64,000 nucleotides of DNA from Lepidodermella squamata (lineage: Eukaryota > Animalia > Gastrotricha). Below, piece by piece: positions 1 to 53,413 of the stretch. Positions within the stretch are counted from its first letter, which is position 1. Every line of letters starts with the position of its first letter. The notes under the pieces were generated by a model. It searched no databases and was not told the DNA's origin. It was given only the letters and a program-made list of their open reading frames with translations. Position numbers and translations under genes: made by a program. The DNA lies in assembly GCA_047495785.1 (NCBI GenBank), contig JBLDXI010000031.1, positions 1,116,001 through 1,180,000 of the forward strand, read 5' to 3'.

Positions 1-283
1 GAAACTTTACGCCTAAAAAGTTCAAGAATGGATTTTGCATTCTTTGCTTTGATCTATCGAGAGATGGTAATATAAGTGGCACGAGCATTCGTCGCTCCGG
101 CACCCTAAGAGTCGAGCTCAGCTTTAACTCAGCCACTACATCTGTTCTTCACCTATTACTACTAGCTGAAAGAGATGCTGTAATCGAGGTCTGCTTTTTT
201 CCGATGGATCGTTTATTGTTTCTATAAAAAACTCGACTCCCCTTCAGATTACAAAAGCGCGAGAAGTTCTCTACGAATCATGA
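1..283 (+). CDS. Maverick major capsid protein (double jelly-roll), C-terminal part; exons <1-188, 248-283
   Basis: Frame from nt 3 reads FKNGFCILCFDLSRDG...SGTLRVELSFNSATTSVLHLLLLAERDAVIE. After GT-AG intron 189-247 it continues ITKAREVLYES*. This matches the typical Polinton MCP end (FDL...G.LRLE..F...E.D..IEI...R.V). Confidence 0.85.
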
Positions 284-819
284 ATACCGAGCAGATCAAT
301 CAATTTGTATCACATGACAAGTTTTTATCACAGGCTCGAACTCTGGTTGTGCCTTGCGATGGCCTCGTTGAAATAGGTCTCGTTCCAGATCTTAAGCGCC
401 CCTTAGGCATAATTGTTAATACGGATGAATCTCATCGGCCTGGTCGTCACTGGGTGTCTATTTTTCTGTCAAAAAGCAGCACTGAATTTTTTGACTCACT
501 CGGGCAAGAGCCTTCCTACTATAGCTGCTATATAGATAATTTTCTAAAGCTGAATGCCAAAGGAATTCCTTTTTCTAATGTTACCTTTCGTAGTTTACAA
601 CATTCGCGGAATAAAGTTTGCGCTTTATATTGTATTCTTTTTATCAGACATCGTAGCAAAGGTCTTAGTCCATCGCGTTTTCTCGCCTCATTTTCAGCGA
701 GTAACTTACATAGTAACGACTTGCTAGTTTACAAAAGCGCACGTAGAATATTCAAAGCCTATAAAAGGCTTCAGACCTGCATTCAGCCTATTTTACCTAG
801 AGATGGCAACATACTATAG
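280..819 (+). CDS. Adenain-like (C5) cysteine maturation protease
   Basis: IIVNTD...PGRHWVSI (His), EFFDSLG (Asp), LQ.....VCALYC (Gln/Cys) motifs. The ATG overlaps the MCP stop (ATGA). Confidence 0.93.
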   Translation: MNTEQINQFVSHDKFLSQARTLVVPCDGLVEIGLVPDLKRPLGIIVNTDESHRPGRHWVSIFLSKSSTEFFDSLGQEPSYYSCYIDNFLKLNAKGIPFSNVTFRSLQHSRNKVCALYCILFIRHRSKGLSPSRFLASFSASNLHSNDLLVYKSARRIFKAYKRLQTCIQPILPRDGNIL

Positions 820-3233: not shown

Positions 3234-4649
3234 TCAGAACATATTTTCATCGTCGAGATCATTGTCGTCAGCGAGCGACGGCGGTGACGCCAAATTGCTA
3301 GTACTGCTGCTGGTCGTCATTGTCGAGCTACTGCCGCTACTAATGCTCAAATCGTTGTCAGCTCGCCACCAGTAGTAGTTGTTCGAAGAGCCTGGGGCGG
3401 CGACGGAGGAGCTCGCACCTGGCGCGTACGCGCCAGGTACGAGCTCGGAGGCGGCGGCGGCGGGGCCCGGGGAGGCGGGGAAGTTCGAGCTGGTGGTGAA
3501 GGTGTCCATGCTGTTGTTGCTGCTGTAAATCATAGGCTGGATCACCGCGACCGGGCGTAAGTTTTCAGTGTTGCTGTTATATTCATCTTCTGCACGCTGG
3601 TTGCGTTGTTGTTGTTGTTGTTGTTGTTGGTGGTGGACGGATGAAGCGGACGACTGTGGGACGACGGCAACGGGCAAAGGTGGTGGTGGCAGGCACTGGC
3701 ATTGTACTAGGCCCGGCCAGCAGCAGACACATGCCGCAGTAGCACCGCCTGCGCCACTTCGCCGTGATGGCGTCAGACCAGCCGCCAGCTCGTGCTGTTC
3801 ATCCAGCAACTGACACCATGCCCACATCGGAATCATTACGTTTTGTTGGCTCGCGACGAAGCTTCTGGTATTAGAAATAGACGTAGAGATGGAGTCTGTC
3901 GAAGAAGGAGACGATGCCCAGCTCGCTGGATGAATCCGCCGCATTGCACGTTCGATGATAAAATGAACATGCACAGCCCGAATTCGCTCACCTCGGAAGT
4001 TTCTCAGAGCATCGAAAAGCATGTGCTCGAGAAGAGCCTCGCGGCCGCTGTGATTACTTGCCGAGGTGAGCGAGTCGTACATGATCGAGCCTTCCGCATG
4101 CGGGTCGCGGTTCATAAATTTGGCCTCGAGAGAAATAGTCTCGTACATCGCCGTTGACTGCGTGCTGTCGATGTACGACAGTCGAGCAGCGTCAGTCAAC
4201 AGCGGAGGCCAAAAACTTGCCGCGACCAAAGCATCGTCGATGGTGGAAGTCGGTTCGCTGGTGCCGGCGGTCTCGTAAAGGTACGCCTCGCTGTCGCGTG
4301 AGTTTATGGCAAATATTTGGCACCATTGCCATACACCCACGGCGCTGTGAACAGGTCCGTCGCTCGGTCGGGCTAACATGGCGACGTCGATGTTAGGGGG
4401 ACAATGTTCACGAAGGAATGTACAGTCCAGCCGTCTGCTGGCTCGTCGTATCCATGTCCGGACGTGCTCCAGGGTCACGAATCGACCCCGGATGTTCGCC
4501 GCGAAGTCGAATAGTGCGGCCTCGAGAAACGCCCGGATACCAACGGCCAGCCAGACGGCAAAGACCTGTGAGTTCGCTCCAAACAGGTCTGGCGCGAACA
4601 ACATGATAGCAGCAGAAGCAGAAGCGGCGGCGCCGGCGATGGAAGACAT
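3234..4649 (-). CDS. Maverick accessory protein with a duplicated ~80-aa domain and Q/S-rich acidic tail
   Basis: Long open frame with a likely ATG at 4649 (MSSIAG). Two related segments: FLEAALFD...EHVRTWIRRASRR...WQWCQ and LLEHMLFD...VHVHFIIERAMRR...WAWCQ. Confidence 0.7.
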   Translation of the reverse strand: MSSIAGAAASASAAIMLFAPDLFGANSQVFAVWLAVGIRAFLEAALFDFAANIRGRFVTLEHVRTWIRRASRRLDCTFLREHCPPNIDVAMLARPSDGPVHSAVGVWQWCQIFAINSRDSEAYLYETAGTSEPTSTIDDALVAASFWPPLLTDAARLSYIDSTQSTAMYETISLEAKFMNRDPHAEGSIMYDSLTSASNHSGREALLEHMLFDALRNFRGERIRAVHVHFIIERAMRRIHPASWASSPSSTDSISTSISNTRSFVASQQNVMIPMWAWCQLLDEQHELAAGLTPSRRSGAGGATAACVCCWPGLVQCQCLPPPPLPVAVVPQSSASSVHHQQQQQQQQRNQRAEDEYNSNTENLRPVAVIQPMIYSSNNSMDTFTTSSNFPASPGPAAAASELVPGAYAPGASSSVAAPGSSNNYYWWRADNDLSISSGSSSTMTTSSSTSNLASPPSLADDNDLDDENMF

Positions 4650-4726
4650 GATGACAACGAAAAAATAATTTAAGATTAGAAGACTAAAGAACAATAAAGA
4701 AAAATTTGGTTAATTGTGCCTGTTTT

Positions 4727-7700
4727 TTATTGGTGATACCCATAAGGTAAAGTGCTAATGACAGATGAATTTATCGTCGATGTTTTTTGCTCAGTTAAAA
4801 TAAGAGAACGCTTTTCAAAACAAGTGAGTCGAATAAATTTTTGGAAACGTTCTTCCGAGCAGGTGAGGTGAGCGAGTGGAATCTGCTTATGTTGAATAAC
4901 ATCGCCTTGTTCAATCCCGAGGCGAGGTTCATCATCATCGTCATCACTGTCGTTCTCAACACCATCCGACGACTCGAGCGATTGCTGTTGGAGAGCCGAG
5001 AGTAAAAGACGAGACAAGGACTCGAAATTGAGTGTGCTTTGGGTTAAAAAACTCTGGCGTATTCCTTTGACCTTGATTTCGACGCGAAGTTTAGATGTGA
5101 GGTAGCAGTAGCTTTTTGCGCCAAGGCATGTAAATTCTATAATGTGCTCATCTGGATCCAATTGGTTGGACAAATCGCCTAGAAAATCACCAATATCCAG
5201 CAACAGCGGTTGATTACGTGGTTGAATCCAGAAAATCGAGTCGGTGTCCGTGTAGCAGGCGAGATTTTGCACCTTGAACAACTCACGAAACAGCTTGATT
5301 CGGGCGTGGCTAGTCACAAAGGCCGCAATAGGTAGGCAAACGTTGGCACTCGGTGCTTCTTCGTCATTCACACAGGTGTAGGCAACTTGCATTTTGAGAG
5401 GGTTCGTAACATTGTAGCCGACGGGATTGATTTCGCGAACCGTATTCGTGGAGCAGAGCAGAATTTCAGCTAGTTCTTTTTGTGAAGAGACGTACGTTTT
5501 GCGCGGTATTTCGATTTTCAGCGCCCATCGCCCAAAGAATGAGTTCAAAAGCAGCTTGCTCACCATTCGAAGGCCGGGGTTTTTCGCTTTCAATTTTTCC
5601 GGGTCCAAATGAATTTTTTCTCGGCGAAAATATTCAGCGATAAAATGTGTCTTTTTCTCCTCAGTGTTGGCTGAAGGCGGATAGCCGGATGCTTCTGCTT
5701 TGAGTTTAAGAAAATGTCGAATAAAACTTTAAAAAAAGGAATAGTAATTAGAGCCATTTTTGCAGGGGTTTTTTTATATATTGTTTACCCGTTGAAAATG
5801 TCACTGCGTCGTTCAGGATAATCGTAGATTTCATGCAATTCAACAATTTTGTAGTTGTGTTGTAGTGCTTCGTTCAACTCAATGGTCGTGTACGTTCCGC
5901 GGAAGGCTCGCATATCATCTGAGTGTTTACATTCCGTGTTGATGTGGTATCGATTTAGTCTCTTGAAGCGCGACGCCTCGTTGCTGCATGCATAGCAAAG
6001 TGAGAAACACAGCTTGCCGTGTGAATTGCGCATGGGCAGTATCGGGATGAGGAGGTTGCGGGGCGGGAGAAAGAGACCGGCAACGAGCCCGAGACATTCC
6101 CTATCAAACCCGTCTGTATTGAAGAAGCGTTTGAGAAGCATGTCATGATTAAGTCGTTGACGAAGAGTCCGCTCGCAGGGGAAACCGACGGGATAAACGT
6201 GATCAACCATACACGCCGGGTAGAGACTAGGTAACAAATAGTTAATAGTGGAAAAAAACCAATTCAAAGCGAAGTAAATGTTACCTACCTTATAAAGTCA
6301 GCAGATTGAATGGTTTCCTCACTTGTGTTGCATTTAACGCGTAGTTTAAATGGCTCGCATCGGCCGCCGAATAGAGAATCGCGAGGTCTGATGGGGGGAG
6401 GAAGATTGCCGAAGTCGGCAACAAATTCCCGGATTCGTTCATCGGCTTCGATCATTGCTCTGAATTCGCATTCGTAGATAAATTCGTACCGAACGTTGAT
6501 ATCGCGCAGTAGCTGTTGCCTTTCTGACACCTCATCGTGAAGTTCTCCGAAAAACTTGCCGAGGCGTCGATTGAAGTCGTGAGAGTTGAAGCATTTCGGA
6601 CAACCTTAGCGACGAAGATAATAATAATAATAAGGAATTCGAGAGATCAAAGAATACCGTGGATGTAGCAACCATGATAGTCAATTGCAAGCGCATCCAC
6701 AGCCTCGTGGGTTGTGGGGTGAAGATGAGCCGGGACATAACTAGACGGTAGAGATGGAGAAGACTGTAATTGAAAATTAACGAGCTTTGTTAGAGCTGTT
6801 GCCTCACATTAGCGTCGTCGCGTTCCGCAGGGAGATAAAATTAATATCACATTAAGTAAAGTAATATATACCCGTCGAGATGTAAGACTGTTCGCCGGCC
6901 TGACTTGATAACAACAATACGCTCTTCTCGTCCATTGTGCCCGTGTCGTAATAAGGCATAGTGCTCCGGTTGGAAGCGCTTGAGATACTCGAGGTAAATT
7001 ATAGCCCCTCTACTGGTAGAATCGTTTGCAGAAAATCCGCTGGGTGGATGAAGGGCTATCAGCTCGGGTTTGAGGAATAGCTTGCGAAAAATTAAATGAC
7101 CTGAGATGATGGTGGTATTATCGACAGGCAATTATCAAATGGAAAAATTGTAGGGCATTACTTAACGAGGCTAGTGTGCTAACGGCGAAGAAGGGGTCTG
7201 TGCTGCAATAGTCGATTATCAGACGGCGGAATCGGAGGCATGATTGTAGTAAAACATTGACATCTTGCCGGCAGTAGTCGATGAATGATTTGTGAAAGTC
7301 GAAAGACTCTCCATTTTGTTGTTTTTCAGCTAAAAACGACATCAGTTCGCCATATTCCGCTGTCGACATGGTTTCATAGCCATATGCATGTGGCGGTGGG
7401 TAAGGTCCGATATAGTTGTAGCTAAAAAAATATATTGTATTTTTTTCGTTAAGAAAAAATTAATGAATTTACTATTGCGGCTGATTCATTTTTCGAGGAA
7501 AAAAGGTCTTTTTAACCGAGAGTGAAAACATAGCCGGTAGATTTCGCAGTGGGGCAAAGAGAAACATCCAGCTATCGATGATTTTTATACGGCGACCAAT
7601 TGAAATTTGTATGAGTTTCCCATTGCGCTCAACAATTTGAAATTTCACATTGACTCGAGTTTGAAGCTCTGTTAGAAGGAACCACGAGTCGAAGCTGAAT

Positions 7701-9588
7701 TGAGGAAAAAAATGAAAATTAAAAAGCAAATGTTACGTGATTTATACCGTGCTGTGAAGTGGGCGATGGCTACTGAATGGGCGTTTTCCGGAGAGAGCAG
7801 AAAATCGAGAAATTGGGCAGCCGAATCGTCACCAGAAAAAACGTGCTCGCCACAGGACGTCGTACAGTTTTCCGATTGGATTATTGGTTCTTCATTCATA
7901 CATCCGGGACAGCATTTGAAGGCAACACAGAGGTTAGGAATTAGCCGACAGCTTGCTTCTTCAACTCGAGTTTCAAAGTCGAAAACAATGATATTTTTAT
8001 ATGAAGTGCGATCTACGAGTGGCGCAACTTGCATATAGCATTGATGCCTTGGGAGAGATTGACCGACTGGGAGGTTCTGAGCAGTGGCTAGGATAGAGTG
8101 ACAGATTCTACATCGCCGACCTTTGCAGTTTTTGTGTTTGGTCAGATCGATGAATAGCCGTGAGCAGTTGACACAGCGTTGCTTGGGCTGACATCGGTGA
8201 TTGACCTTGTGATTATTGTAGCACGTTGGGTTGTAGTAGTTTCGATGGCATTCGGAGCATCGTCGCCATTGTTGGGGGAGGCGACTGCAGTTCGCATCAG
8301 GTTGGAGACACTTATCACAAGCGAATTCACAAGCATGTGCCTGATCTCGCCGACTCAGCCCTTGATAGCAGCTTTGACAGAAAAACCGAGTCCCAATGAT
8401 TGAAGCGAGGTTGCTTAGGAGATGAATATGATTATCGCCTGTCACTAGCAGATAGATACTTTCCCGTGGAGTCGGGTCATTTGGTGAAGATGCTGGGTCG
8501 GTGGTCGTAACTCTTTGAACGGAGCTGCTGTAAACTATGACTTTAAAATCGCGATTGTGTAAAAGTTCCAAGGCTTGACGAAGGCTGGTCAGGTCGCTGC
8601 CTAAATTGTATCCAGCTTGGTTTACAGGTAACTTTGCCGTTAGTAGAAGCTGTATTGCGGCTTGGCTTTGTAATGATTGCCTGGGATCTCTGATTTGGTC
8701 GTAGTATTTTTTAAGCTGGCGATCAGCCTTGTTTGCCATATAGAGCAATCTAGCAGCACCGAGCATCAGTGCACGAGGTAGACAGCGGTGGTCTTCCGTA
8801 TTGTTAATCTGAATGACTGAGCGAAAGTTACTGAGGTGTTTGTCGATAATTTCAGGAACGGTTGGTCGCTTGGTCACATCTCGACGGCGTTTCCCTGAAA
8901 CTTTTATGCTCTTGGTAGGGTTTGAGCCGTCGCTACTGTCGTTTTCGGCGCTGGTTGTTGGGACTCGACATACTACAGCTTCGATGAACCAGTGACCCTC
9001 TAGGAGGAGATTTTCTTGACTATTAAGAATTCGCTCGATAAATGAGTAGATCCGCTCATCTGTCAACTTTTGGATCGGGTGAAACGGCAGGCAGATCGCT
9101 CTTAAATAGAAAGCTAGTAATCAATTGGAAGACAAGCTAGAAAAGAGAACCTGTGGAGTTGAGGGTGTTCAATTCGTAGTTTGACAAAGATGCGCTCCTT
9201 CTTAGGATTGATAGATACGTGTTGATTAATTTGGAGTCGAAGCTTGTCGGCTATATCAATTAGCATGATAACTACGCGGCGAAATCGCTGTTCTACGTCT
9301 TCAGATTCGATCTCACCGCGCTTCGCGCTTGGAATTGTGAATGTATGCAGGAGGGTAGACGAGTTGTTTGGCTCCGGAAATTCATCGTCGGCATTTTCTG
9401 GGGTTGCTCGATTTCGCCAACTACCAGGCCGACCAGCACCTAGCTGAGGCGGGTCTTGGAAATTTTCGTCGAGCAGGTGATTAAGGAAGTGTAGCTCAAA
9501 AATTTGACCATATATTTGAAATTTCGGAGCAAGGACGCGTTGATTAGCCCGAACAATTGAAAAGTAAAGCGGAGAGGGATCAATTCTC
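4727..9588 (-). CDS. polB: Protein-primed family B DNA polymerase (TP/vOTU-like N-terminus, Zn ribbons, exonuclease, VSR-like insert, polymerase); at least 9 exons, 5' exon unresolved
   Basis: Introns at 9101-9150, 7695-7747, 7422-7472, 7101-7161, 6741-6871, 6605-6657, 6227-6288 and 5727-5788 restore one frame. Motifs: ExoI VFDFET, ExoII AHFTARFD, ExoIII YCRQDV, motif A DFISLYP, motif B KLLLNSFFGRW, motif C YTDTDS, KSY and KVKG. Confidence 0.93.
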
Positions 9589-9728
9589 CTAAGAAAAAAA
9601 TTGAGAATAAAATTTATTATTATTAGACTTGTATATTGAGAGAGCAAGAAAAAACTATATAGGGGGAAAAAACTTGATCTTTCAATATTAAATATTATAG
9701 TTATTGTAGTCTTATTGCTGATGTGACG

Positions 9729-10634
9729 TCATTCGATGAGAATGACCTCGTCTTCATCCACTTGGTACCCATCCTCGTCATCTTCCTCCATTTCAGGCTC
9801 GGGCTCGCTGTTATCTGACGCCTCTTCCTCTTCTTCCATTTTCTTAGACGGTTGTTTGGCAGGTGGGATCACTATAGGGGATTGAACCTCAGATTTTTGA
9901 AGACTTTGTTGCGTTGATTCATATCGACTGTCGCTGGCAGCTGAGGCTATCATGAGTAGTTTGGGCGATTGTTCCTTGGTAGTAGATTTTTTGAGGCTCT
10001 TCTTTTTGACCAGAGAACTCGTTGGAGTGGAGGGGACTGCTGCTTTTTTAATAGCGTTGGATGGTGCTTTCTTTTTAGTGAGGGTCGTTGCATTTTTCTT
10101 GTTCCCTGGTGTCATAGTGCTCTGGAGAATTTCTAGCTGGCTGTCTACGTCTCGAATGAAGCCGGGCAAAACCTCGGTATATAGATGTCGGAATGATGCT
10201 GCGTCTATAAGAATGCCATTAACTGTAGGATAGCTGACGCCCGTATTAGCTAAGATTTCATTGAATAGAAAATTTTAAGTACTAATATATAATTTAAATT
10301 TACAGCCGTAAGGGCGAGTGAAATAACGGATGGCGACTCTGGCTGGAAGAGCTGGTGCTCGTTGTATGGAGAGTCGGACTAATTCAGCTATCAAATGACG
10401 TTCGGGAAACTCGTAGCTTGGATCCGCGATGGCGATTTCAAGCTGCCCGATCCACTCTGTGTCTTCGATGAAGTGGAGCTTGAGCGCAGCCAGAAAATCT
10501 TTAGCATCTGCTGTGAAATGGCGATGTTGGGACACGCGGTTGTTTATCCATATCGTGCCGGGCGGCCGAAAATTTATGGCATATGACGACCCGAACGAAG
10601 CTACAATGCAGTGCATTTTGGAAAGAGTGTTCAT
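9729..10634 (-). CDS. PC4/p15-like ssDNA-binding protein with basic and acidic tail; exons 10634-10304, 10249-9729
   Basis: Intron 10250-10303 (GTAAAT...CTTAG) joins two ORFs into RVAIRYFTRPYGSNTGVSYPTVNGILIDAASFRHL...IRDVD. This resembles the PC4 core (VDIREY...P..KGISL....W..L...I.DID). Confidence 0.62.
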
Positions 10635-10995: not shown

Positions 10996-11680
10996 ATGTC
11001 TCGAGTGTGGTGTTTCATCGACGGCTGTGTTGGCGTAGGTAAAAGTTGGCTTTTAAGTCGCATGCAAAGGGAGATTGGGGAGCAGTTTAATGGCCGTGAA
11101 ATTCGTTATTTTGAAGAACCGGTTAAAGAATGGCAGCAGCGAGGTGATCTATTGGCTGCATATTATAAAGATCCACATCGGTACGCATTCGACCTACAAT
11201 GTTTAGTTCATGGAGCCATGGCTAGGCAAACCGTCGAGATTGGCCGTTTGGAGCGAAATATTGTCGTAGTCAGTGATCGCTGTTGGCTTACATCCCCTCA
11301 CGTCTTTGTGAAGTTGGCATATTCGCGGTATGGTCTTGAGTAAATTAGGAAAAATATCAATTTTCATTATTTTATTCAGCGGTTATTTGACGGATACGGA
11401 ACTGAATATGCTGCGTTGTATCTACACGCCGTTAGATGAGTGGGCACCAAAGCCGTCGAGAATGTTGTTTTTGAAGGCCCCATTGTCGATTTTGCAACAA
11501 AGGATCCAGATGCGTGGGAGAGATGGTGAGACTTCGATAGATATGGAGCACTTAGCTGCTATGGATAAAAGTTTTGACCAATTTTTTGACGATTTTTCAG
11601 CTGGGAGTAAAATAATGTTGTCTGAAACCGATAAGGAACAAATTGATATGAAGTTATTGCTTGAAAAAATAATAAATTGA
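10996..11680 (+). CDS. Deoxynucleoside kinase (dNK/dCK family); exons 10996-11327, 11380-11680
   Basis: IDGCVGVGKS P-loop, EEPV.EW, LLAAYYKDPHRYAFDLQ, SDR and RIQMRGRDGE lid. The 52-nt GTATGG...TTCAG intron restores the frame. Confidence 0.93.
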
Positions 11681-12148: not shown

Positions 12149-12817
12149 TTATTTTTTTAATAGAAATAACGCGATAAATGCTTTAATCAATGACGCTGTT
12201 GTTCCAAAGCTGTGAACACCAGTGATGATAATTTTGTTGGTATGAAAAAGAAGAATTGAGAGGGAATGTTTGGCATTACATTGAAGAGGGCGAGTTCTTA
12301 AGGCGGGAAATTTCTCTGGATGATATATTAGGAAATTAGAGTGTGCGGCAGCAATATGACTTAGATTAGTCTGAAATGGAAGCTTTCCAGTAAAGACCAA
12401 ATTTTTTATTTTAATACTTGAGAGTTTGACTGGATAACCAGCTATTAGAATTTTTCGCGCAATTTTTCGAATAGCTTTTCTGGCTATAGCAAGCGACCGG
12501 GCACCTGTACATATGAGGGTGCCGGACGAATATAGCATAAGCGTTATTAGTGGATTTTTGACTCTTATAAAGAGAGCTGAAGTCATTTTTTTCGGCTTAT
12601 ATTCACAGTTTTTAAGTAGGTAGCATAGCTGTTTTAGGTCTAACTTAGTTTGAAGGGAACAAATTGTTATTGTATTGACCAGTTCGAGCTTTATGTCGAT
12701 GACGGCATTGCCGGGGAGAGCGACGGTGGTGATGTCTTTGTGCTCTGGTGAAGAAAAATAATGCCAGGAGTCTGGAAATTGTGTCTGGAACAGACAGAAC
12801 CAGCAATGTTGAGACAT
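12149..12817 (-). CDS. TBP: Divergent TATA-box-binding protein homolog encoded inside the Maverick
   Basis: Two TBP repeats: LVNTI..CSL...LDLKQL...NCEYKPKK...LYSSGTLICTGARS...ARKAIRKIARKI...GY and IKNLVFTG.LPF...L..I...H.....YHPEKFPAL...LLFHTNKIIITG. Confidence 0.9.
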   Translation of the reverse strand: MSQHCWFCLFQTQFPDSWHYFSSPEHKDITTVALPGNAVIDIKLELVNTITICSLQTKLDLKQLCYLLKNCEYKPKKMTSALFIRVKNPLITLMLYSSGTLICTGARSLAIARKAIRKIARKILIAGYPVKLSSIKIKNLVFTGKLPFQTNLSHIAAAHSNFLIYHPEKFPALRTRPLQCNAKHSLSILLFHTNKIIITGVHSFGTTASLIKAFIALFLLKK

Positions 12818-13110
12818 TTATCAATCGCCTCGCATAGAGACGTGTTGATGTTGGGTGTGAAACAGATGGCAATGAAACTGTCTTGTGGCTTCAGATTAGG
12901 TTTAACTATTACAGATGCCTTCGACTTTTTCTTAATTGATTGATTAATTATGCTCTTTCGAGAAGCGGGTTTGCCTTTGACTGCGGACGGAGGCGGTAGC
13001 TCGTGTCTGGTTGGTGATGATGGCGAGGACGTAGAGTTGGAATTAAAAATATCAGCAAAGTTAGGGGATCCGATGTCAAAATTGAATGATTTTGAGGAGC
13101 ATTCATTCAT
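12691..13110 (-). CDS. Hypothetical S/P/K-rich protein overlapping the TBP 5' end
   Basis: Open frame with ATG at 13110, overlapping TBP by ~127 nt in another frame. No recognisable family. Confidence 0.4.
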   Translation of the reverse strand: MNECSSKSFNFDIGSPNFADIFNSNSTSSPSSPTRHELPPPSAVKGKPASRKSIINQSIKKKSKASVIVKPNLKPQDSFIAICFTPNINTSLCEAIDKCLNIAGSVCSRHNFQTPGIIFLHQSTKTSPPSLSPAMPSST

Positions 13111-13349
13111 ATTAGAAAATATGAAAGTTAACAAATGAGAAAAATAGGAAAAGTGAAAAAAGTGAGGAAAAAAGGTGCTCTTATATGAACAAAATGAAAA
13201 TGTTGCTAGAAAAAAAATGCTTTTATTCTCGATATTTAGCTAAAATAGGTGAATTAAGCAGCGGCGGATGTAAATGTCTTTGTAAGTCTTATAATGCTAA
13301 TTTTTACGCTCAAACAGCACGTAATTCGTGGACCCGCTGTAGTGTGCCC

Positions 13350-14264
13350 CTATCCTCCTCCTTTACTTTCGCGTGCAGTCTCCTGGAGTACGCGAATTTG
13401 TTTTCCGAAATATAGCAGCAACAGCAGTGGCTTGACGCAATAAACCCTGATGAATTCTTCATCTTTGAATTTTCCTGGATTCTCCGGATCCTCAGGATTT
13501 TCCGCTCGCTGCGCGTAAAGCTCGAGGACCATATCAATTTCATCTACTACGTCTCTCCTCTCCTTCAGTCTGTCCTCAGATCCGATTTTCGCAATAGTTG
13601 ACGACTTGGGCACCTTAGTTTCCACAAAAGTGCCGGTATTTGTAGGAAGCGCATTCGCCATCTGGGCCTCGCCGCAAATTTTACGGTTCAGACCGCGCTT
13701 CAACTTCGCTGGTTTTTCGTACTGCAATTGTCGAGCGAATTCTTTGCGCTTTTCTCCAGTTATACGGCGCGGTTTAGGCAGACCAGCCTCATGGTTGACC
13801 GGTTTATTCGGCCGAAGAAATATCTCAATTTCCTGCGCAGCATCAGGTTGAAGATTTGAGAATATATCAAATTCTCTGCAGCTGCTCGACCCACAATAAG
13901 CATTCCCGACCAATTCGTGGGTTTTTTTCAATTTTTTCGCATATCGAAAATTGATGGTACATTCCCCTGAAATTGGGGCAACTTTGTTGTCGAATATTAC
14001 CGACCATCCTGGCTGCAGCGCTCCTCGTTTATCGATCTCGATAGTGTCAAACTGCTCTTTGGCCATTTTGAATGATAGGCTCCGCATCGACGGATCTGAC
14101 TCCTCATTCGACGCTGGTGCTGCTGAGGTGGTGCTGGTGCAGCTATCGTGAGGCTGTTTAGTTGCTGGTTTCGGGGCGAAATATTGTGGCAAATGCCTTC
14201 TCATGACAGTATACAGGTGACTGCGTCTTTTCAGAGTGTTATCGCCATGTAACCTGCCGGCCAT
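13350..14264 (-). mobile_element. 3'-truncated NOF-FB/Mutator-like transposase N-terminal fragment
   Basis: C...C...H followed by RRITGEKRKEF...L and FIRVYCVKPLLLLLY...QIRVL resembles the region preceding the first catalytic Asp of NOF/MULE transposases. The ORF stops before any DDE core. Confidence 0.55.
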
Positions 14265-16763
14265 TGACGCAAAAACACCGACTTCGGGATTTGGACCTGT
14301 AATGAATGCAATCTTATGTTATTCCGATATGTACATATTCCTGGATTTTTGTATTCTTTTAACTATTGAAACTAATTACTGCAAACTAATTCACCCATTT
14401 ATACCTTATTAGTAAACTATACAGCGTGTCCCATAAGTTGCGCGACTATTTTTCAATTTTCCAAAATTTATGAGCGAGAATTAAAATATTTTTCCGAAAT
14501 TAAGCCTGACGGGAGAATGTTCCATCATTCATCCACGAAATTAACGAAAAAATTGAAAAAAATCCGGAGAAAACTCGGAAACCCCCGATGGTAACTGGTT
14601 CGGTAATTTTCGTTATTATACCCGGTTGGGCTAAATTTCTCGGGTTGGGAAATTCGGAATGTAGAATGTAGCAAATTTGTTCCTAATTAATTTTCCTGCA
14701 CTCCAGAATTGCTGTTTCCTTTTTGTCCTTATCTATGAGCTAAGGATATAATGGGTCCTAACTTTGGAGAAAGCAAGTTTTAAAATGTTTAAAATTTTGA
14801 TTTTCGTCTAAAATGTGATTTTCCTGTCATCCACGACCAAAACGGTCGGAGAAAAAATATCCTCCGAACCTCGCACCTCATGATTGATTCAAGATAATAC
14901 AAAAAGCTTGTAAACAAACCTGTTCCACTTGGGATCAGAGGTTGATCCTTCATAAAATCCTTGATTTTGTTTATCAAGACATCGTCATCCTCCTTGGACG
15001 ATTCCATAGCGCCAGAAAACGTAATCAAAACTATAGCAAGTTAAGGAATAAACAATAAGTATATGTGCAGATTTCGTCAACATAAGGAATTGAACGTATA
15101 AGGAATAATAAGGGGCATATATTGAAACGTTCATGGCTCATATAAAGGACGTCAACGCCGGTGCGGAATATGCGGCCTGCTTCTTCAAGTAGCGAAAATC
15201 GGTGATAATATTTTAGAATTGTGGGAAATACGTTTAGGTATATATGTGTAATTTTGAACACCCTGCCTTTAATCGTTTCCTCATATGTTCCGTATGTCAT
15301 GTTACCGCTTCTGCCGTTGTTTCAGCCGTGGAGTCTCCTCTCTTCTTTGTGCGCCGCACACCGAATCACCGTTATTGACGGTATTTTATAGTATTACCAT
15401 TAATTAATATAATTACCGCACCGGTTATATTATATATAGGGCGCGGCGGCGCACTGGCCGACGCACGCGCCCCTCATTTCAGCTCTATCGCTGTAAGCGT
15501 AAAAGGCACCTAATATTACACCTCGCCGCCGGTGATCGCAAACGACTGATTATCTGAAATCAGTATCCGAGTCAAAAAATGCGTATGACTGTTTCGGGTT
15601 GAAATAAGCCGTACTTTTATTGTCTGCCTCAATTTTATTTCTGTAATGGCTTTATGAGGGCTGTTAATTATTGCCTACTATGGACAATTTTGGATCAGCT
15701 GCAGCAAGATTCGTCGAATAAGACCAGGAAATATTTCAGCGCCGATAAATACCAGTCGTTAACAATAAAACTCGAGTAGTGACAGCATCTAATTTATTGA
15801 TCCTGAAAATTATCAATTACGAAACATCGATTCCGATTTGGTATTTATTTCAATTTCCGCCGCTATCAGAGGTCCGTCATTGCATCAAATCGCAAAATGA
15901 ATACCATAACAAGATTCAGCATAGTCGAATTAATAATTCCTGAAAAATTGGCACACATAACAGCTGTACCAAGCACAGAAGCTGCGAAAATATGTCTTGA
16001 AACACCCTATTTCAATGAAAAGTGTCCCGAACTGGGTCATAACAGTTTCCAATCTGAAATCTGACGCTGCCACGAGAATCAGCAGGGTCGAAAACCCCCA
16101 TAACAGTCAACTGAGCACGAGAAGCCACATAATAAGCGCAAAAGCTAAGAAAATTGTGTTGTGGACACCCTAAAACTTGAAGTCACAAGCCAAATTTGGC
16201 TTCTGAGCGACAGGTGCGTCGGGTATTGGCAAAATTAGTGCCAATCGACTCCAATGAGCCATAACAACTATCCCACAAAGCGGCAATTCTATAACAGCGG
16301 TGGTTTTCACAGAAGCCAAATTTGGCTTGTGACTTCAAGGCAGTAATTATGACCCGTCGTCGTGCAAGCAAAAAATGGTTTATTTGCGGCTGTAATAATT
16401 TTCATGCCGCGTGTTGAATTCGTGGTTGAGCTATAATTATGCGCGCTTAATTAGAGGGCGCGGTTAGTAGGCTAGCTTAAAGCAAGACTTCTTGTTGCCA
16501 GCACTCAGCACCTCGCCCCTCGCCAAGCCCGGAATAACCATTGAAAGTAGTAAAAATGAAAAAAGCGTTGAAAAGAATTCGGGAAAACTAGAAGTAGAAT
16601 ATAATATCAATTTTGCAAATACTTACGCAGTCCCGTAGAAAACGTCTAGCTCCTGACGTCATTTGGGGTAAAAATTTGTTAAATCGCCGAGTTTTTTATA
16701 CGCAGCTTTTACAGAAATATCTAAGTGATGCGAATTATAATCAACTCAACCTTTCGAGAGATA

Positions 16764-16924
16764 CAGGGTTGTGACCGATAAAAAAATGGAAATTGTTGGG
16801 TGATCCTGGCGGGCCAATTTGCAATTTAGCCAAGTAAGGCTAACGACTCGTAAAATTAGGCTCTTATCAGGTCGTTCATTGTTGCGCCACAAAAATGTTC
16901 ACTTTTCCTTCGATCGCAACCCTG
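16764..16924. mobile_element. Putative MITE
   Basis: Ends CAGGGTTGTGACCGA and TCGATCGCAACCCTG are inverted repeats (13/15 match) around ~130 bp of non-coding sequence. Confidence 0.45.
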
Positions 16925-18847
16925 AAAGCCAAAATCGTCAAAAGAATAGCATAGCATAGCATTTTCTTTATTTTATCTTTTCCTAATTGATCAATTAATT
17001 GATCAAAAATAACATAACAATAACAATTGAGTACAAGTACAGAGACGAAGAAAAAATAAGAAGGAAAAATGATAAAATAAAATTCACTCCGGTGTACCCA
17101 ATTCGCCGGGCGTGATGTAAATTTTGTTCACTCCAAGCGAACCGAGTGTCAAAGGAGGACCGGTAGCAAGCTATCGTCAAACTCAAAACTCACCCTTAAT
17201 CCGATATTTCAGTTTCACCAAAATAACAATGAATTTTATTGTCACAGTCAAATCCGATAAATTTAGGTAAGCGGGTAACATTTATTTACATAATGTGATC
17301 AACTTTCAGCCGATCAACTTTCAGCCTGGGCTTCCTGAAATGCCGGGGAAAATAAAATAAAACGCCCTTTCTTCCACAGCCATTCCCGGATCCGTGGTCA
17401 TTTGTGAGTAAAATTACCATAGACAACTCTATACAGATCGGAAACTAGCGATCTTCCTATAGTAAATAAATTCACACCAAAACTTGAAAAAGTGGGCACG
17501 CGACCTTCATTTTTATTCACTCATCGCCCTATCCGCCCATAGTAATTTTTCCAATTTTTAATTATTTTCTAAAATTCCCTGAGAAAATGTTTCATTTCCG
17601 ACAAATTTCAAACAAATTTTGCGGAATACTAGAAGCGCTCCTCTATCGAATGAGTCCCGTCTCATGAGACGGTTTTTTTTCTAACTTTTTTTAAATTATC
17701 TCAAAGTTGGTCACTTTTACGAAAAATCGCCATTTCAAGAGTCTTTCAGGACGGTAAAATTTTTCATTTTGAGCCGAAAAATTCCGAGAAAAATACTATG
17801 ATCTTATTCGATTTTTGCTCTGTCCAAAGATAAAAAACTTCTCTATCCAAGAGCTGATCAGAATTTTTTGAATTTCGCGAAATTTGCATTCGCTTGATAA
17901 TACTTTGAGCGAGCTAAAAATAGCTACAAAAAACCTAATAACTATTTTAAGATTTAGCAGTATCACGCAAAATCCCAATATTACAAGTCAGAAAATTTCG
18001 CGAAATTCGAAAAAAATTCTGATTTGCTCAAGTCGGAATAAATCATGGAACAGTTGAGTTTTCATGAATGACTTTGGTAATGAAAGCCAAAATTTGAACC
18101 AAAGAACGCATTTTAACAAAAACCATTTTTATTGAACGCTTAAACTGTGAGAGATGAGCTTATAAACAATCAAAATTGTCAGTTCTGAATATTTGATATG
18201 CACCGTGCAGCTATTTACTTGAAAACTGGCGTCGACCGTGAACTGGCGTGATTCAAACCGGTTCATCAATCTGTACAGGATCATCGCCCAGCAATGCCAG
18301 TCGCTTCGCATAGAGATTTTCATCCGAAAATCGTTGATCAGCTTAGTCGGCGAATCGTTTCCTGGAATTTTTCACCGTTCCAATCGTCTCAAACGCATAT
18401 TCGCTGCAGTTATTCAGCAATTCCTTCAAAGTAATCGCCGTCGTCGCCGTCGGACTGAACGCCGGAATCTGATTGGCCAAGATGAAATTCGGACTTTTGC
18501 TGGAGTAGTGCAATATCTTGAGCATTGCGGTTTTCACGAGCTGATTGGTGTTGATGCCAGCTGCCAGCATACTGCATTTGGTTAGAATCTACTGCGTTTC
18601 CGAGAAGTGATTTCCACCAAAAAAAATGCAGTCTCTTTCAACGCCGTTAAGGACTCCTTAATTTTTTCTTGTTCAGCTTTTTGTAATTTGTCGAGACTAA
18701 CGCCGAAATTAGACGCTCTTTGAATGGAAGGTTTCTCATTGCAAATCTGGAGTAGATGGCTACTTTGTTATCACGTCGCATCCATGGCACTTTCACAACC
18801 CATGGTCTTCTGCAGTTTTCAGGCTAATTCTGTTTTTCCTCTGGAAT

Positions 18848-21800
18848 TTAGTAGATGATAAACCCATCAGACGACCGCAGAGAAGAGTGTAGGGACCGCG
18901 TTTGAGCGGCATTTGCTAACTGTCCATTACGATCTACAAATGGAAATGAGCATGAGTATGGCGAATACAAGAGGTCAACGTGGCCATTTCTTACGGCCAA
19001 AGCCCCAGGCGTCTGGCCGTCTTTATCCTTAGCTTTCAAATCCGCTTTGCAGTTTCTGACCAGGAAATCCTCGACTTCAGTGCGTCCATTCTCCGCAGCC
19101 AAATGCAAAGGCGTTTTGCCGTTTTGATCAACAGCTTTCACATCCGCTCCGTATTTTTCGATCAGCATTTTGACGATTGCTTCGTGACCAGCCGATGCAG
19201 CAAAATGCAATGGCGTTTTGCCGGTTTTGTCGACAGCTTTCACATCCGCTCCGTATTTTTCGATCAGCATTTTGACAATTGAATCGCAACCAGCCGAACC
19301 AGCAGCAAAATGCAAAGGCGTCTCGCCGTGTTGATTAACAGCTTCCGGAAACAAATTGAATTTACCCCCGAAAAACGGTACTATTGAAGCCAAGCTAGCT
19401 ATTATAAAATAGAATAGAGACGTCCAGCTGTATGTAATTAATTTGTCCATCAGAAGCTTCACCACTGAATCGTGGCCAGCTATTACAGCCAAATGCAAAG
19501 GCATTTTGCCGTTTTGATCAACAGCTTTCACATCCGCTCCGTATTTTTCGATCAGCAACTTCACAACTGGAACTTGGCCTCTTTTCGCGGCCAGATGCAA
19601 AAGCGTTTTGCCATCTTTATCAATAACAGCATTCGCATCGACTCTGTATTTGTCGATAAGCAACTGCAAGGCTATAACGTCGCCTCTCTCTGCAGCGAAC
19701 TGTATTAACATTGGCGTCGGGTTCAGCAACTTCACGACTGAATTTTGCCTAGCAATTACAGCTAAACCCAGTGGCGTTTTGCGGTTTTGATCAACAGCTT
19801 TCACATCCGCTCCGTATTTTTCGATCAGCATTTTGACGATTGCTTCGTGACCAGCCGATGCAGCAAAATGCAATGGCGTTTTGCCGGTTCTTTCGACAGC
19901 TTTCACATCCGCTCCGTATTTTTCGATCAGCATTTTGACAATTGAATCGCAACCAGCTGATGCAGCAAAATGCAAAGGCGTCTCGCCGTGTTGATTAACA
20001 GCTTCCGGAAACAAATTGAATTTACCTCCGAAAAATGGTACTATTGAAGCGAAGCTAGCTATTATAAAATAGAATAGAGACGTCCAGCTGTATGTAATTA
20101 ATTTGTCCATCAGAAGCTTCACCACTGAATCGTGGCCAGCTATTACAGCCAAATGCAAAGGCATTTTGCCGTTTTGATCAACAGCTTTCACATCCGCTCC
20201 GTATTTTTCGATCAGCAACTTCACAACTGGAACTTGGCCTCTTTTCGCGGCCAGATGCAAAAGCGTTTTGCCATCTTTATCAATAACAGCATTCGCATCG
20301 ACTCTGAATTTGTCGATAAGCAACTGCAAGGCTATAACGTCGCCTCTCTCTGCAGCAAATTCCTCCGGCGTTTTATTAACAGCTTTCGCATAGGCTCTGT
20401 ACTTTTCGATCAAAATATCCACGACTGGTAAATGGTTATTCCGAACAGCCAGATGCAGAGGAGTCCGGCCCTCTTTATCGACATATTTCCCATGCTCTCC
20501 AAATTTTTCGATCAGCCACTTCACGACTGTAGCGTGTCCATTCTCCGCGGCCAAATGCAAAGGCGTTTTGCCGTTTTGATCAACAGCGATCATAACCGCT
20601 CGGTGGTTTTTGATCAACATTTCGACGATTGCATCGTGACCAGCCGATGCAGCCAAATGCAATGGCGTTTTGCCGGTTTTTTCGTGAGCATTCACATCCG
20701 CTCCGTAATTTACGATCAACAATTTCACAACTTGAACGTGGCCACTCCCCGCAGCCAGATGCAAAAGCGTTTTGCCGTTTTGACCGACAGCTTTCGCATC
20801 TGCTCCGTAATTGTCGATCAGCAATTTAACGACTGACTCGTGGCCGTTCTCCGCAGCCAAACGCAAAGGTTTACAGCGGTATTCATCGACTTTCTTGTTC
20901 GCTTTGAGGTAGTCGATCAGCAACTGAACGACAGATATAGCATCCCAAAACAGCGACATCAAGCCATATTCAGCAGCGGCTTTTGCCTCAGCATTCATCA
21001 GTATCTCCACGGCTTTAACGCGGCCATTCTGCGCGGCCAGTTGCAAAGGCGTTTTGTCGTTTTCATCAACAGCTTTCATATTCGCTTTGTATTTGTGGAT
21101 CAGCAACTCTATGACTAGAGCGTGCCCATTCTCCGCAGCCAAATGCAAAAGCGTCCTGCAGTCTTTATCAACAGATTTCCCATCCGTTTGAAATTTGTCG
21201 ATCAGCAATTCCACGACTGGCGCATGGCCGTTCTTCGCAGCCAAATACAAAGGCGTTTTGCTATCTTTATCAACAGATACATCCGCTCCAAATGTTTCGA
21301 TCAGCCACTTCACGACTGTAGCGTGTCCATTCATCGCTGCCAAATGCAAAGGCGTTTTGCCGTTTTGATCAACAGCTTTTACATCGGCTTTGTAGTTTTT
21401 GATCATCATTTCCACGACGGACACGTGGCCCTTTTCTGCTGCCCAATGCAATGGCGTCCGACCCTTATTATCAACAGATTTCACATCTGCTCTGTAGTTT
21501 TTGATAAGCAGCTTCACGGCTGGAGCGTGTCCATTCTCCGCAGCGGAATGTAATATCGTCCGTGCTTCGGTGTCGACGGCTTTCACGTCAATTCCGTAGT
21601 TGTCAATCAGCAATTCCACGACACATTTGTGGCCATTAGTTGCAGCCAAATGCAAAGGCGTCCTGCGGTCTCCAGGAACAGCTTCTGCATCCACTCCGTA
21701 ATTACGCAACAGGAACTGCAGAACTGAATCTACGCTACTTTTCGCCGCCAAGCGTATTGGCGCCCATCGTTTTGCGTGAACAGTTTTTACCTCCGCTCCC

Positions 21801-23840
21801 ATCAGCAATTCCACGACTGTAGCGTGTCCATCCATCGCTGCCAAATGCAAAGGCGTTTTGCCGTTTTGATCAACAGCTTTCACATCCGCTCCGTATTTTT
21901 CGATCAGCATTTTGACGATTGCTTCGTGACCAGCCGATGCAGCAAAATGCAATGGCGTTTTGCCGGTTTTGTCGACAGCTTTCACATCCGCTCCGTATTT
22001 TTCGATCAGCATTTTGACAATTGAATCGCAACCAGCCGAACCAGCAGCAAAATGCAAAGGCGTTTTGCCGTTTTGATCAACAGCTTTCACATCGGCTCCG
22101 TGGTTTTTGATCATCATTTCCACGACGGACACGTGGCCCTTTTCTGCTGACCAATGCAATGGCGTCCGACCCTTATTATCAACAGATTTCACATCCGCTC
22201 CAAATGTTTCGATCAGCCACTTCACGACTGTAGCGTGTCCATTCATCGCTGCCAAATGCAAAGGCGTCTTGCCGTATTTTTCAAGAGCTTTAACATTCGC
22301 TCCGTATTTTTGAATTAGCAACTTCACGACCGAAGCGTGACCATAACTTCCTGCCCAATGCAAAGGCGTCCGGCCATCGTTATCAACTGATTTCGCATCC
22401 GCCCCGGCCCTTCCCGTCAGCAACTTAACAATGCTGATGTGACCTTTCTCAGCAGCTAAATGTAAAGGCCGCTTGCCACACTCATTTTTGTAACCAACGT
22501 TTAATTCGTTCTTGAAGTTGGTAATGATTCGGCTAAGACGAAGCACCATCCCATGTTCGGCGCATCTCAGCAGCTCCTGTGGAGTTGATTGAAAGATATT
22601 ATACTTTAAAAACATTCAAAATTCAATTAGGTATAAACCTTTTCTGCGTCGTCCTTGCTTCCAGGCATTGGGTCGCCACCTATTTTTGCAGAAACCGCGA
22701 TTAGCTCGGCTGCTGTTGGTCTCTTCTCGGGTTGATCACCGGGGTCACTCATCATCGACAAAACTAGTTTACTTGTCTCCTGTGAATGTCCGATCAGTTC
22801 AGGCAATCCATTCAGCCTGAAATGAGAGTTTTGACGTTGCCTGAAGCAGAAACATCATAGCGTATTATACTCACAGTGAATTTTTAAGCGCATTGAAATG
22901 TTCCAATGGTTTTGTTTCAGCGACCTGGCCGTTGAACTGTCTCAGCCCCAAATATAATTAAAAATTAATATCATACATATTTGTATCTCACCGGTCTACG
23001 GCCATTTGCAACTTCGTAGAGAGTCACTCCAAGCGACCAAATGTCGCAAGGCTTCGTGTACTCCGAACGAATGAAAACAGCAGGCGATGCGTAGTCGTAT
23101 GTTTTTAGGACTGCCGTAATGTTTTTTTGATTGATACTTGAAATTAATGAGTAAATATAACAGGTTAGATGATTGCAAATGAGCAAACTCTTTCACGTTT
23201 TTGGTCAGTCCGAATCCGCCAAGTTTCAGAAACTTCCTATCCTCGCTAAGGTAAATGTTTTTCGGTGTGATGTCGCGATGAATGATGTCCTTGTCATGAA
23301 GGAGCGTGACCGCAAGCAATAGCTGAAAAATCCAGTCAGCAAATTGATCTTCGGGAATTGTCCTGTGAGGAAGTGAACGGATGTGGTCCTCCAATGTGCC
23401 ATGCGGGCAATATTCCATGACCAAGTAATACATCTCACAATCTGCCTTTGCCGTATCAGTTCCCTGGTATTTCTCTGCAAATGGTATATTTATTCATAGC
23501 GGATTGAGTTGAAACGGCTCACCTTTGAAGGCGCCAAAAACTTCCACAAGGAATTGATCATAAATAGTTACCAGTTTATCATGCTGTGTTTGAGGATGGG
23601 GATTTTAATAAAAAAATTTAATACATACATCAAATTAACCTCTTGCGTGCTGCTTGCAACAATGGTGTCAACGTATTTTTTGCCAAAGCGTTGATCTCGT
23701 CGCATTGCTGTTAAATTCAGTTCCTTCAGCGCGAATTCTTCATTGCCAACTTGAGCAAGGAATACTTCACCGAATTCCCCAGATCGCCCAAGGCTTCTGA
23801 CAATGGTGAATTCTGTGAATTTAGTAAATCTTATGGGCAT
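18848..23840 (-). CDS. Ser/Thr (NEK-like) pseudokinase fused to a long ankyrin-repeat array
   Basis: Multi-exon kinase domain: GRSGEFGEV, ALK, LVMEYC, HRDITPKN, LGGFG, YASPA, DIWSLG. Followed by a 1255-aa exon of ~30 GKTPLHLAA ankyrin repeats. 3' end is uncertain. Confidence 0.85.
19310..20360 (-). repeat. Near-identical internal duplication (660-bp period) within the ankyrin array
   Basis: Sequence at 19321-19700 recurs at 19981-20360 with few substitutions. Confidence 0.85.
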
Positions 23841-24539: not shown

Positions 24540-25490
24540 ACCATTTTCCTTTTTTATTTAAGATAGTGACGTTTCGACGTCATCTGACGTCATCTTCAGA
24601 CATTAAAGAAATCTATAAGACATCAAGATAGAAAGCGGTTTAAAACTAGACAACAACAACAACAAAAATTAGAGTATAATTTGAAAGGAGGCTACAACAA
24701 GACAGATTAATCTATTTAAATAGTTTGGCCTTAATTGAATCCTTCTGGGTGTTGAGATCAGGGTTGTACCTCGCTATAAACAACATTCCATGTAAGAGGC
24801 AGTCGAACTTGCTTCGCCCTTATCGCAGCACAGTGAAACAGCTGGTGATGGTGTCCCGGCTTTTTCCATGCTTAGCCATGTGTTTACCAATTACGCTACT
24901 CTTGTGTTCAACAATACGCTTATGTAGGTGTCGGCCTGTATAGCCGACATAGTTGGAACTGCACCAACCACATTTGAATCGGTAAATCACGCATTGCTGA
25001 TTGACAATTAGCGGCTTCTTTTCCTTTGGTCCAAATTCGGCGTTAATCTTGCGACTGATGAAGACGGGCTGTACTTCCTGTTCGATCTTGTTGCTCAGTT
25101 CGCGCAGTTCAGTCTTTACTTTTCTTGACGCGTTTTCGCTCTTGTACGGTAGGAGTACTCGAACTGGATCCTTCTTTGACGCAGGGTCAGCGGGTTTGCC
25201 AGCAGGTATGGCAAATTTGTTCTCCAGGAACTTTTCGATGACTCGCTCGAACAACTCATCAGGATAGAGAAGGTTTTTGAACACGTTTCGAAGTCGAGAA
25301 ACTTCCATGTCGAAGAGGAGCCACGTCGAGGAAAGCTTGTAAGCGCAGTGAAGCATGGTAGAGACCATGCTACCATGCTTCTACCATGCTACCATGCTTC
25401 TACCATGCTTCTACCATGCTTCACCGCGCTTACAAGCTTTCCTCGACGTGGCTCCTCTTCGACATGGAAGTTTCTCGACTTCGAAACGTG
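24540..25490 (-). mobile_element. 5'-truncated Penelope-like retroelement (RT thumb + GIY-YIG endonuclease) with inverted segment
   Basis: VIYRFKCGWCSSNYVGYTGRHLHKRIVEH GIY-YIG motif with an in-frame stop at 24820. Segment ~25281-25360 recurs inverted at ~25410-25490. Confidence 0.9.
24566..24601 (-). ncRNA. Minimal hammerhead ribozyme of Penelope pseudo-LTR
   Basis: Minus strand GT-CTGAAGA-T-GACGTC-AGAT-GACGTC-GAAA-CGTC-AC: CUGANGA core, stem II, GAAA, palindromic ACGU stem III and GUC cleavage triplet. It lies just downstream of the GIY-YIG ORF and before AATAAA. Confidence 0.75.
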
Positions 25491-48400: not shown

Positions 48401-48609
48401 CGGTTTTCGCCGATAACAACGAACCGTTTTGTTCGCTACCTCCGCTGGCAACCAGCGGCCCGTACCGGTCGGGTTTCACGTACTTGGAGCTGAAAAAATT
48501 GCCGCCCGGGTCGTATCAAGTTGTCCCGACGACGTTCAGCTCCAACGAATTGGGGCCGTTTTTCTTGGAGGTGAAATCGAGTGTTCCAGTCACGCTACGC
48601 CCTAAATAA
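45452..48609 (+). CDS. CAPN7: Calpain-7 (PalB) with two MIT domains; exons 45452-45812, 46205-47488, 47816-48609
   Basis: MIT (EAIFYYTEAI), QTVVSDCSFVASL (Cys), HAY (His), KNPW (Asn) and two calpain-III domains. Confidence 0.95.
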
Positions 48610-53300: not shown

Positions 53301-53413
53301 AATTGCCACCCGGCTCTTACCAAGTTGTCCCGACAACGTTTAGCCCCAACAAAATGGGGCCTTTCATCTTGGAGGTGAAATCGAGTGTTCCAGTCACGCT
53401 GCGCCCTAAATGA
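50368..53413 (+). CDS. CAPN7: Calpain-7 tandem paralog lacking MIT domains
   Basis: Close copy of the upstream gene from the end of MIT2 onward. Catalytic C/H/N motifs are intact, the intron position is the same and the frames are open. Confidence 0.85.

Follow-up and report, generated by a model that had tools for sequence, protein, structure and literature searches.

Near the left end of a 64,000-nucleotide stretch of the gastrotrich Lepidodermella squamata genome (contig JBLDXI010000031.1 of assembly GCA_047495785.1, forward-strand positions 1,116,001 to 1,180,000; hereafter the window), a gene for a TATA-binding protein (TBP) stands among virus-type genes resembling those of Mavericks (Polintons). 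The open reading frame (ORF) at 12149-12817 encodes a complete, intronless, two-repeat TBP, far above any chance match, as had been predicted from the DNA sequence before any database was searched. Two in-frame stop codons precede its ATG, and the frame is open throughout. Pfam family PF00352 matched the 222-amino-acid translation in two stretches (score, 103.4 bits, with the cutoff at 22.9; E value, 5.7e-30), and human TBP was the top match among solved structures (E value, 4.9e-27). An AlphaFold2 model built on an alignment of 96 sequences (alignment A1, containing 95 relatives) had a mean predicted local distance difference test (pLDDT) score of 84.6, with core residues 41 to 205 above 90. 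When the model was compared by Foldseek with human, Arabidopsis, and yeast TBPs, template modeling (TM) scores normalized to the target were 0.83 to 0.90, with root mean square deviations of 1.7 to 2.4 Å. The protein keeps 39 of the 62 columns of alignment A1 that are conserved in at least 80% of the family.

A TBP with one changed phenylalanine pair

Individual residues were read from an alignment with human TBP and from alignment A1. Only two of the four canonical intercalating phenylalanines are present, Phe170 and Phe191, both of which are Phe in 95 of 95 relatives. Position 78 is Met, a residue found there in none of the 95 relatives (Phe in 90), and is followed directly by a single extra residue; position 96 is Tyr, shared with 2 of 95 relatives (Phe in 91). 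The central asparagine pair, Asn48 and Asn139, is retained. Both alignments thus bear out the original prediction that the first phenylalanine pair is changed while the second pair and both asparagines are kept. The asymmetry that it attributed to the DNA-binding surface holds for the phenylalanine pairs but does not extend beyond them, as the two repeats keep conserved columns equally (20/33 in repeat 1 and 16/26 in repeat 2). In the TATA box, the kink at the first base step is made by the C-terminal-repeat pair, and that at the step from base pair 7 to 8 by the N-terminal-repeat pair (reviewed in PMC3142196). By these positions, the changed pair would act at the downstream end of the box.

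The segment that contacts TFIIB, just before Phe170, is also altered. As predicted, the stirrup motif YEPELF reads YHPEKF: the first Glu is replaced by His166 (His in 0/95 relatives), the second Glu is retained, and Leu is replaced by Lys169. The C-terminal stirrup is lengthened by an insertion of four residues (179 to 182). Elsewhere, Thr occupies position 100, which is Lys in 94% of relatives, and Asn occupies position 194, which is Gly in 100% of relatives (Asn in 0/95). The core is strongly basic, with a net charge of +20 versus a family median of +13, and exceeds 94 of the 95 relatives in this respect.

Word-indexed protein searches with the TBP returned no match, and a collection of some 15 billion proteins did not contain the exact protein. 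An exhaustive HMMER search of 1.84 billion cluster representatives matched 3,303 TBPs. The best matches were ordinary cellular TBPs of plants, a sea cucumber, a fish, and a mite, at 34 to 38% identity, and the highest score belonged to a plant gene model that is tandemly duplicated. The 19 named proteins among 150 matches were canonical TBPs of plants and animals, with no member of TLF/TRF2 (TBPL1) or another paralogue family. Overall, identity was 30 to 38% to cellular TBPs, versus 8 to 20% to viral TBPs among the predicted structures of BFVD, which also gave lower TM scores. In a distance tree with 200 bootstraps, the TBP was never nested within the canonical eukaryotic cluster, and its partners were unstable (best, 70 of 200); these were short metagenomic TBPs of 177 to 229 amino acids, archaeal-looking by length. 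We read this pairing as long-branch attraction. The protein is a long-branch orphan of cellular type, and the distance tree does not place the donor lineage.

The divergence does not have the form expected from decay. In simulations of substitution-only drift to 37% identity (indels excluded), the frame stayed open in 0 of 300 runs, and the stops averaged 6.6. Retention favors the conserved core columns, at 36 of 59 versus 23 of 99 elsewhere (Fisher p = 3e-6). Taken together, the two results indicate that the bulk of the divergence cannot be neutral, and they rule out a retro-pseudogene of a canonical TBP decaying neutrally, a possibility that the original prediction had raised against itself. 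The lineage, as read from this one sequence, appears to have diverged under selection for the TBP fold.

The virus-type gene block and its surroundings

Features of the left part of the window are listed in Table 1. We consider it likely, though well short of certain, that the TBP gene belongs to a Maverick-like element, because of gene packing, codon usage, the absence of introns, and a divergent neighboring deoxynucleoside kinase (dNK) gene. From the gene for a family B DNA polymerase of the protein-primed type (PolB) to 14.3 kb, the genes form a compact, intron-free array with spacers of 48 to 470 nucleotides (nt). TBP codon usage (G+C content at third codon positions [GC3], 0.35; log-ratio, +0.07) is like that of the protease and PolB genes, whereas all nine of nine host ORFs had negative log-ratios. 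Introns are present in the host genes of the window and absent from the TBP gene. The dNK gene, which is convergent with the TBP gene, is a second cellular-type gene in the block that has become very divergent, as much so as the TBP gene. Its two pieces, searched separately, matched no solved dNK by sequence, and its two-frame reading reflects a single frame change or else a single short intron.

Table 1. Features of the virus-type gene block and its right flank, by position in the window
Feature	Coordinates	Strand	Evidence and remarks
Adenain/Ulp1-family cysteine protease	280..819	+	Peptidase_C5, E 0.004 (below cutoff); solved viral cysteine protease, E 2.4e-5
Protein-primed PolB, broken	4727..9066	-	Two collinear PF03175 pieces, 23.5 and 24.7 bits (cutoff, 25.8)
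Three orphan ORFs (177, 146, and 119 aa)	9114..10634	-	48 to 106 nt apart; same orientation as PolB
dNK	10996..11680	+	Two frames; Pfam dNK on both pieces at successive profile positions
TBP gene	12149..12817	-	222 aa, intact; unstructured N-terminal tail of 40 residues, then two-repeat saddle core
TBP repeat 2 (residues 131 to 205)	12203..12427	-	Phe170, Phe191, and Asn139 kept; His166, Lys169; 4-residue insertion; Gly194 to Asn (alignments)
TBP repeat 1 (residues 41 to 130)	12428..12697	-	Met78, Tyr96; Asn48 kept; one inserted residue (alignments)
147-aa orphan ORF	12691..13134	-	Other frame, overlaps TBP start; no Pfam match
304-aa orphan ORF	13350..14264	-	Last long ORF before the ORF-poor stretch; host-like codon usage
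ORF-poor stretch, ~4.6 kb	14265..18847		No ORF of >115 aa; separates the gene block from the ankyrin gene

Cysteine proteases of the adenain/Ulp1 family are of the kind carried by Mavericks and large DNA viruses. The PolB span contains 34 stops even in its best frame, with recognizable pieces in more than one frame. The three orphan ORFs next to it gave only chance-level Pfam matches and have element-like codon usage; the 146-amino-acid member is rich in Lys and Ser and ends in an acidic tail. The 147-amino-acid ORF, which is preceded by a TATA-like AT-rich leader, may represent a small gene in its own right, an ORF located upstream on the TBP transcript, or a frame open by chance. Searches of Pfam, solved structures, and protein databases found no relative of the 304-amino-acid ORF, and its single-sequence model (pLDDT, 38) was unusable for fold comparison. 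The element extends past the left edge of the window, so at most one of its ends lies inside the 64 kb; the right end is probably at or within the left part of the ORF-poor stretch. Genes for an integrase, a capsid, and a packaging ATPase may be situated past that edge on the left.

No RNA polymerase domain was detected in any ORF of at least 150 amino acids in the window, in agreement with the original prediction. The PC4-like and histone-fold neighbors that it described found no such support: neither these nor any other transcription-factor domains were detected by Pfam at E values up to 5 in sense ORFs of at least 79 amino acids between 1 and 15.3 kb. Pfam and solved-structure searches of the window also returned no packaging ATPase.

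By eye, we had taken positions 1233-1577 for what is left of a packaging ATPase and the N terminus of PolB for OTU-like, and the searches supported neither assignment. In the left part of the element, the 3' end of ORF 1233-1577 is overlapped by a perfect 105-bp tandem duplication at 1467-1682 (2.0 copies, 100% matches). Between the protease side and PolB lies a 486-amino-acid ORF (3234-4694, minus strand) with a GC3 of 0.62 and no database match. It has a hydrophobic N terminus, Ser/Ala-rich tracts, and a poly-Gln run. Long antisense ORFs lie inside the same interval, which leaves the 486-amino-acid ORF a candidate gene.

Host genes in the window include two tandem calpain-7 genes and genes for an NXF1/Tap-type export factor, a FERM protein, and homologues of NOC3 and CBF/Mak21. 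The calpain-7 proteins are 50 to 58% identical to those of any catalogued animal, at about the same level in flatworms, molluscs, arthropods, and vertebrates, which points to an invertebrate host that has no close relative in the protein collection. The two calpain-7 copies (46228-48609 and 50368-53413, plus strand) share 84 to 92% DNA identity over matched exons. At 18848-22615 (minus strand), an intronless ankyrin-repeat ORF of 1,255 amino acids is built of 102-nt units; its 300-nt internal duplicates, 660 nt apart and 99% identical, suggest a recent internal expansion. An 81-nt inverted repeat, 99% complementary (25282-25362 and 25410-25490), lies beside an ORF with a weak GIY-YIG match (E value, 0.004), and the region from 24820 to 25490 may be a different mobile element. 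Farther to the right are direct repeats that are 100% identical and 663 nt apart, within 38491-39453 and overlapping ORF 38725-39180, and two paralogous ORFs (53900-54382 and 55339-55830, plus strand) of 160 to 163 amino acids, with no Pfam match and 72 to 76% DNA identity in matched segments. Observed/expected CpG is about 0.9 to 1.5 over positions 1 to 30000, in element and host alike; because CpG is not depleted, the region is unlikely to be heavily methylated at cytosines. The window contained no Rfam families or tRNAs.

Possible role of the TBP and competing explanations

Mavericks/Polintons are regarded as wholly dependent on transcription by the host, and, to our knowledge, there is no account of how their genes are switched on. 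The explanation that we favor, with confidence about evenly divided for and against it, is that the TBP is element-borne cargo that served the transcription of the element. We postulate that an ancestor of a Maverick/adintovirus-like element in an invertebrate genome captured a cellular-type TBP, which would then have evolved fast under selection for a working saddle. The protein would still bind promoter DNA and kink it at the upstream end of a TATA-like box, where the C-terminal-repeat phenylalanine pair acts (PMC3142196). It would read the downstream end differently, giving a preference for a variant box. It may assemble host RNA polymerase II (Pol II) on the genes of the element by touching TFIIB, or a substitute for it, in an altered way, a step that we liken to the action of the herpesvirus TBP mimic, no polymerase of the element's own being in view. 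The present copy, in a decayed element with a broken PolB gene, is probably a relic unless it has been taken over by the host.

A more ambitious form of the cargo explanation, which we advance tentatively and regard as somewhat doubtful, is that an animal Maverick lineage possessed its own promoter-recognition factor. In that form, a captured TBP, with half of its DNA-binding surface and its TFIIB contact remodeled, would redirect host Pol II to a variant TATA-like box on element genes. This would amount to a minimal equivalent, made of a single protein, of the complex that initiates late-gene transcription in herpesviruses, arisen independently in Polinton-class elements.

Several observations weigh against the cargo explanation. 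The Maverick label comes from sub-threshold Pfam matches and one solved-structure match. As for the predicted location within a Maverick, the gene adjoins PF03175 PolB pieces and an adenain-family protease, but inverted- and direct-repeat searches of the 64 kb found no terminal inverted repeats, no rve integrase was present in the ORFs scanned in the window, and Pfam and solved-structure searches of the window returned no double or single jelly-roll capsid gene. The window contains no second copy of the TBP or of any element-side protein. Markov composition is host-like from about 13 kb rightwards, by a weak test in which the cross-validated element and host distributions overlap, and the 304-amino-acid ORF beyond the TBP gene combines host-like codon usage with a lack of relatives. 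No relative above 38% identity was found in the protein libraries searched. The TBP ATG has no TATA-like leader and sits within the 147-amino-acid ORF. The element-specific promoter motif that had been proposed did not emerge: upstream words were shared among 12 element-side ORFs no more than among shuffles, and two candidate words were not enriched (4 occurrences versus 3.35 expected and 3 versus 1.85 expected). DNA binding, box preference, and factor contacts are predictions read from residues of the protein. The case is weaker than the original prediction held it to be, given a single copy in a decayed element, the question of the element's limits, and the virus-borne TBPs already on record.

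Another explanation is that the gene is a host TBP paralogue, comparable to insect TRF1 or tapeworm TBP2, or a retrogene of one, which lies beside a dead Maverick and serves a subset of host promoters. Extra animal TBP paralogues about 40% identical to TBP do occur (PMC3142196), with Taenia TBP2 at 42%, and in a host lineage as poorly sampled as this one (judged by calpain-7 identity), an unsampled paralogue would look like an orphan. Yet Taenia TBP2, a known paralogue, retains all four phenylalanines, and the best matches of the protein studied here are canonical TBPs, with no known paralogue family among the 19 named of 150. The intact state of the TBP beside a broken PolB, the lack of terminal repeats that would mark the element's limits in the window, and the host-like codon usage of ORF 13350-14264 would all suit a host gene. 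The TBP gene itself, however, is intronless among intron-bearing host genes (Taenia TBP2 has five exons), groups in codon usage with the element and with none of the nine host ORFs, and is packed with dNK, a second very divergent virus-type gene. On balance, we consider a host paralogue unlikely.

We think it improbable that the present copy is a functionless relic whose frame is open by chance in a dead element. A 669-nt frame can remain open by chance for a time after the death of an element, the adjoining PolB gene is heavily interrupted, no capsid or integrase gene is visible in the window, and no promoter-like leader lies directly upstream of the TBP ATG. Against this stand the fully open frame, the fold-defining positions, all of which have pLDDT scores above 90, and the divergence, the bulk of which cannot be neutral. 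A relic of this kind would in any case speak to the present copy and not to the original role of the gene.

Quite improbable, in our judgment, is that the TBP was element cargo acting as a decoy, which would soak up TFIIA, NC2, TAF1, or Mot1-type factors or occupy host TATA boxes unproductively and so damp the transcription of the host or a rival virus. With two of three TFIIB-contact residues changed and a longer stirrup, the protein might bind DNA yet not recruit TFIIB; repression through TFIIA sequestration is reported for TLF/TRF2 (PMC3142196); and the element genes showed no promoter motif of their own. The changed phenylalanine pair, however, points to altered rather than preserved TATA recognition, and the known TBP homologues and mimics of nuclear viruses are initiators.

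Comparison with known TBPs

Compared with canonical cellular TBPs (PF00352; solved human, Arabidopsis, and yeast proteins, e.g., 1cdw, 1qna, and 1ytb), the protein has the same saddle at about 2 Å, with both central asparagines, the second phenylalanine pair, and the 39 of 62 conserved columns noted above. It differs in its Met/Tyr first pair, the changed Glu and Leu of the TFIIB contact, a stirrup longer by four residues, Asn in place of Gly194, and a more basic core. TLF/TRF2 (TBPL1) proteins are likewise divergent in DNA-binding residues; they are about 40% identical to TBP and have altered promoter choice (PMC3142196). Unlike them, the protein described here matches canonical TBPs best, keeps two of the four phenylalanines, and is encoded by an intronless gene in a virus-type gene block.

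The original prediction supposed that viral TBPs occur mostly in giant viruses with their own RNA polymerase. Giant-virus TBPs are indeed established, but this picture is incomplete. In beta- and gammaherpesviruses, a TBP mimic works together with host Pol II (PMC12529657, PMC4893493), TBP belongs to the core genes of mirusviruses, for which nuclear replication is predicted (PMC12768974), and a gene labeled TBP appears on the map of an adinto-like MELD virus in the section of Starrett et al. (2021) on non-animal eukaryote datasets (PMC8502044, Fig. 5 legend).

The closest working analogue is the herpesvirus mimic (KSHV [Kaposi's sarcoma-associated herpesvirus] ORF24, UL87 family), although the gastrotrich protein stands outside that family. 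In both cases, a TBP-fold protein is encoded by a nuclear DNA virus or element that has no RNA polymerase of its own (here, none in view). ORF24 recognizes TATTWAA and is without the acidic TFIIB-contact residues (PMC12529657), one of which is lost in the TBP described here. In contrast, ORF24 is a much larger, multidomain protein that has all four phenylalanines and needs five viral partners. A UL87-domain protein was only a weak structural match to the TBP (rank 44; TM score, 0.39, normalized to the query). The UL87-type architecture, in which an N-terminal polymerase-binding domain precedes a C-terminal DNA-binding domain, is not seen in a protein of 222 amino acids with a tail of only 40 residues.

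The TBPs of Nucleocytoviricota and mirusviruses are likewise virus-encoded homologues, but with 8 to 20% identity in BFVD and lower TM scores they are farther from the protein described here than cellular TBPs are. Giant viruses also carry their own RNA polymerase, and none was seen in the window. The nearest precedent in kind is the adinto-like MELD virus (PMC8502044), a Polinton-class virus with an adintovirus-like PolB and a TBP-like gene. That gene is a map label, given without analysis, in non-animal datasets, whereas the host here is an animal. Our literature searches turned up no work on a TBP carried by an animal Maverick.

The original prediction spoke of an undescribed transcription-hijacking module. 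The TBP is real and its surface altered, but the module is drawn from one gene. The protein joins the established virus-borne TBPs, with an unusual surface, and is not a new system. If the cargo explanation is true, some Mavericks bring their own promoter-recognition factor, as herpesviruses, mirusviruses, and giant viruses do, which would suggest that small nuclear DNA elements reach the solution of an own TBP repeatedly. As a natural variant, the half-altered surface of intercalation lends itself to the question of how each phenylalanine pair shapes the choice of box.

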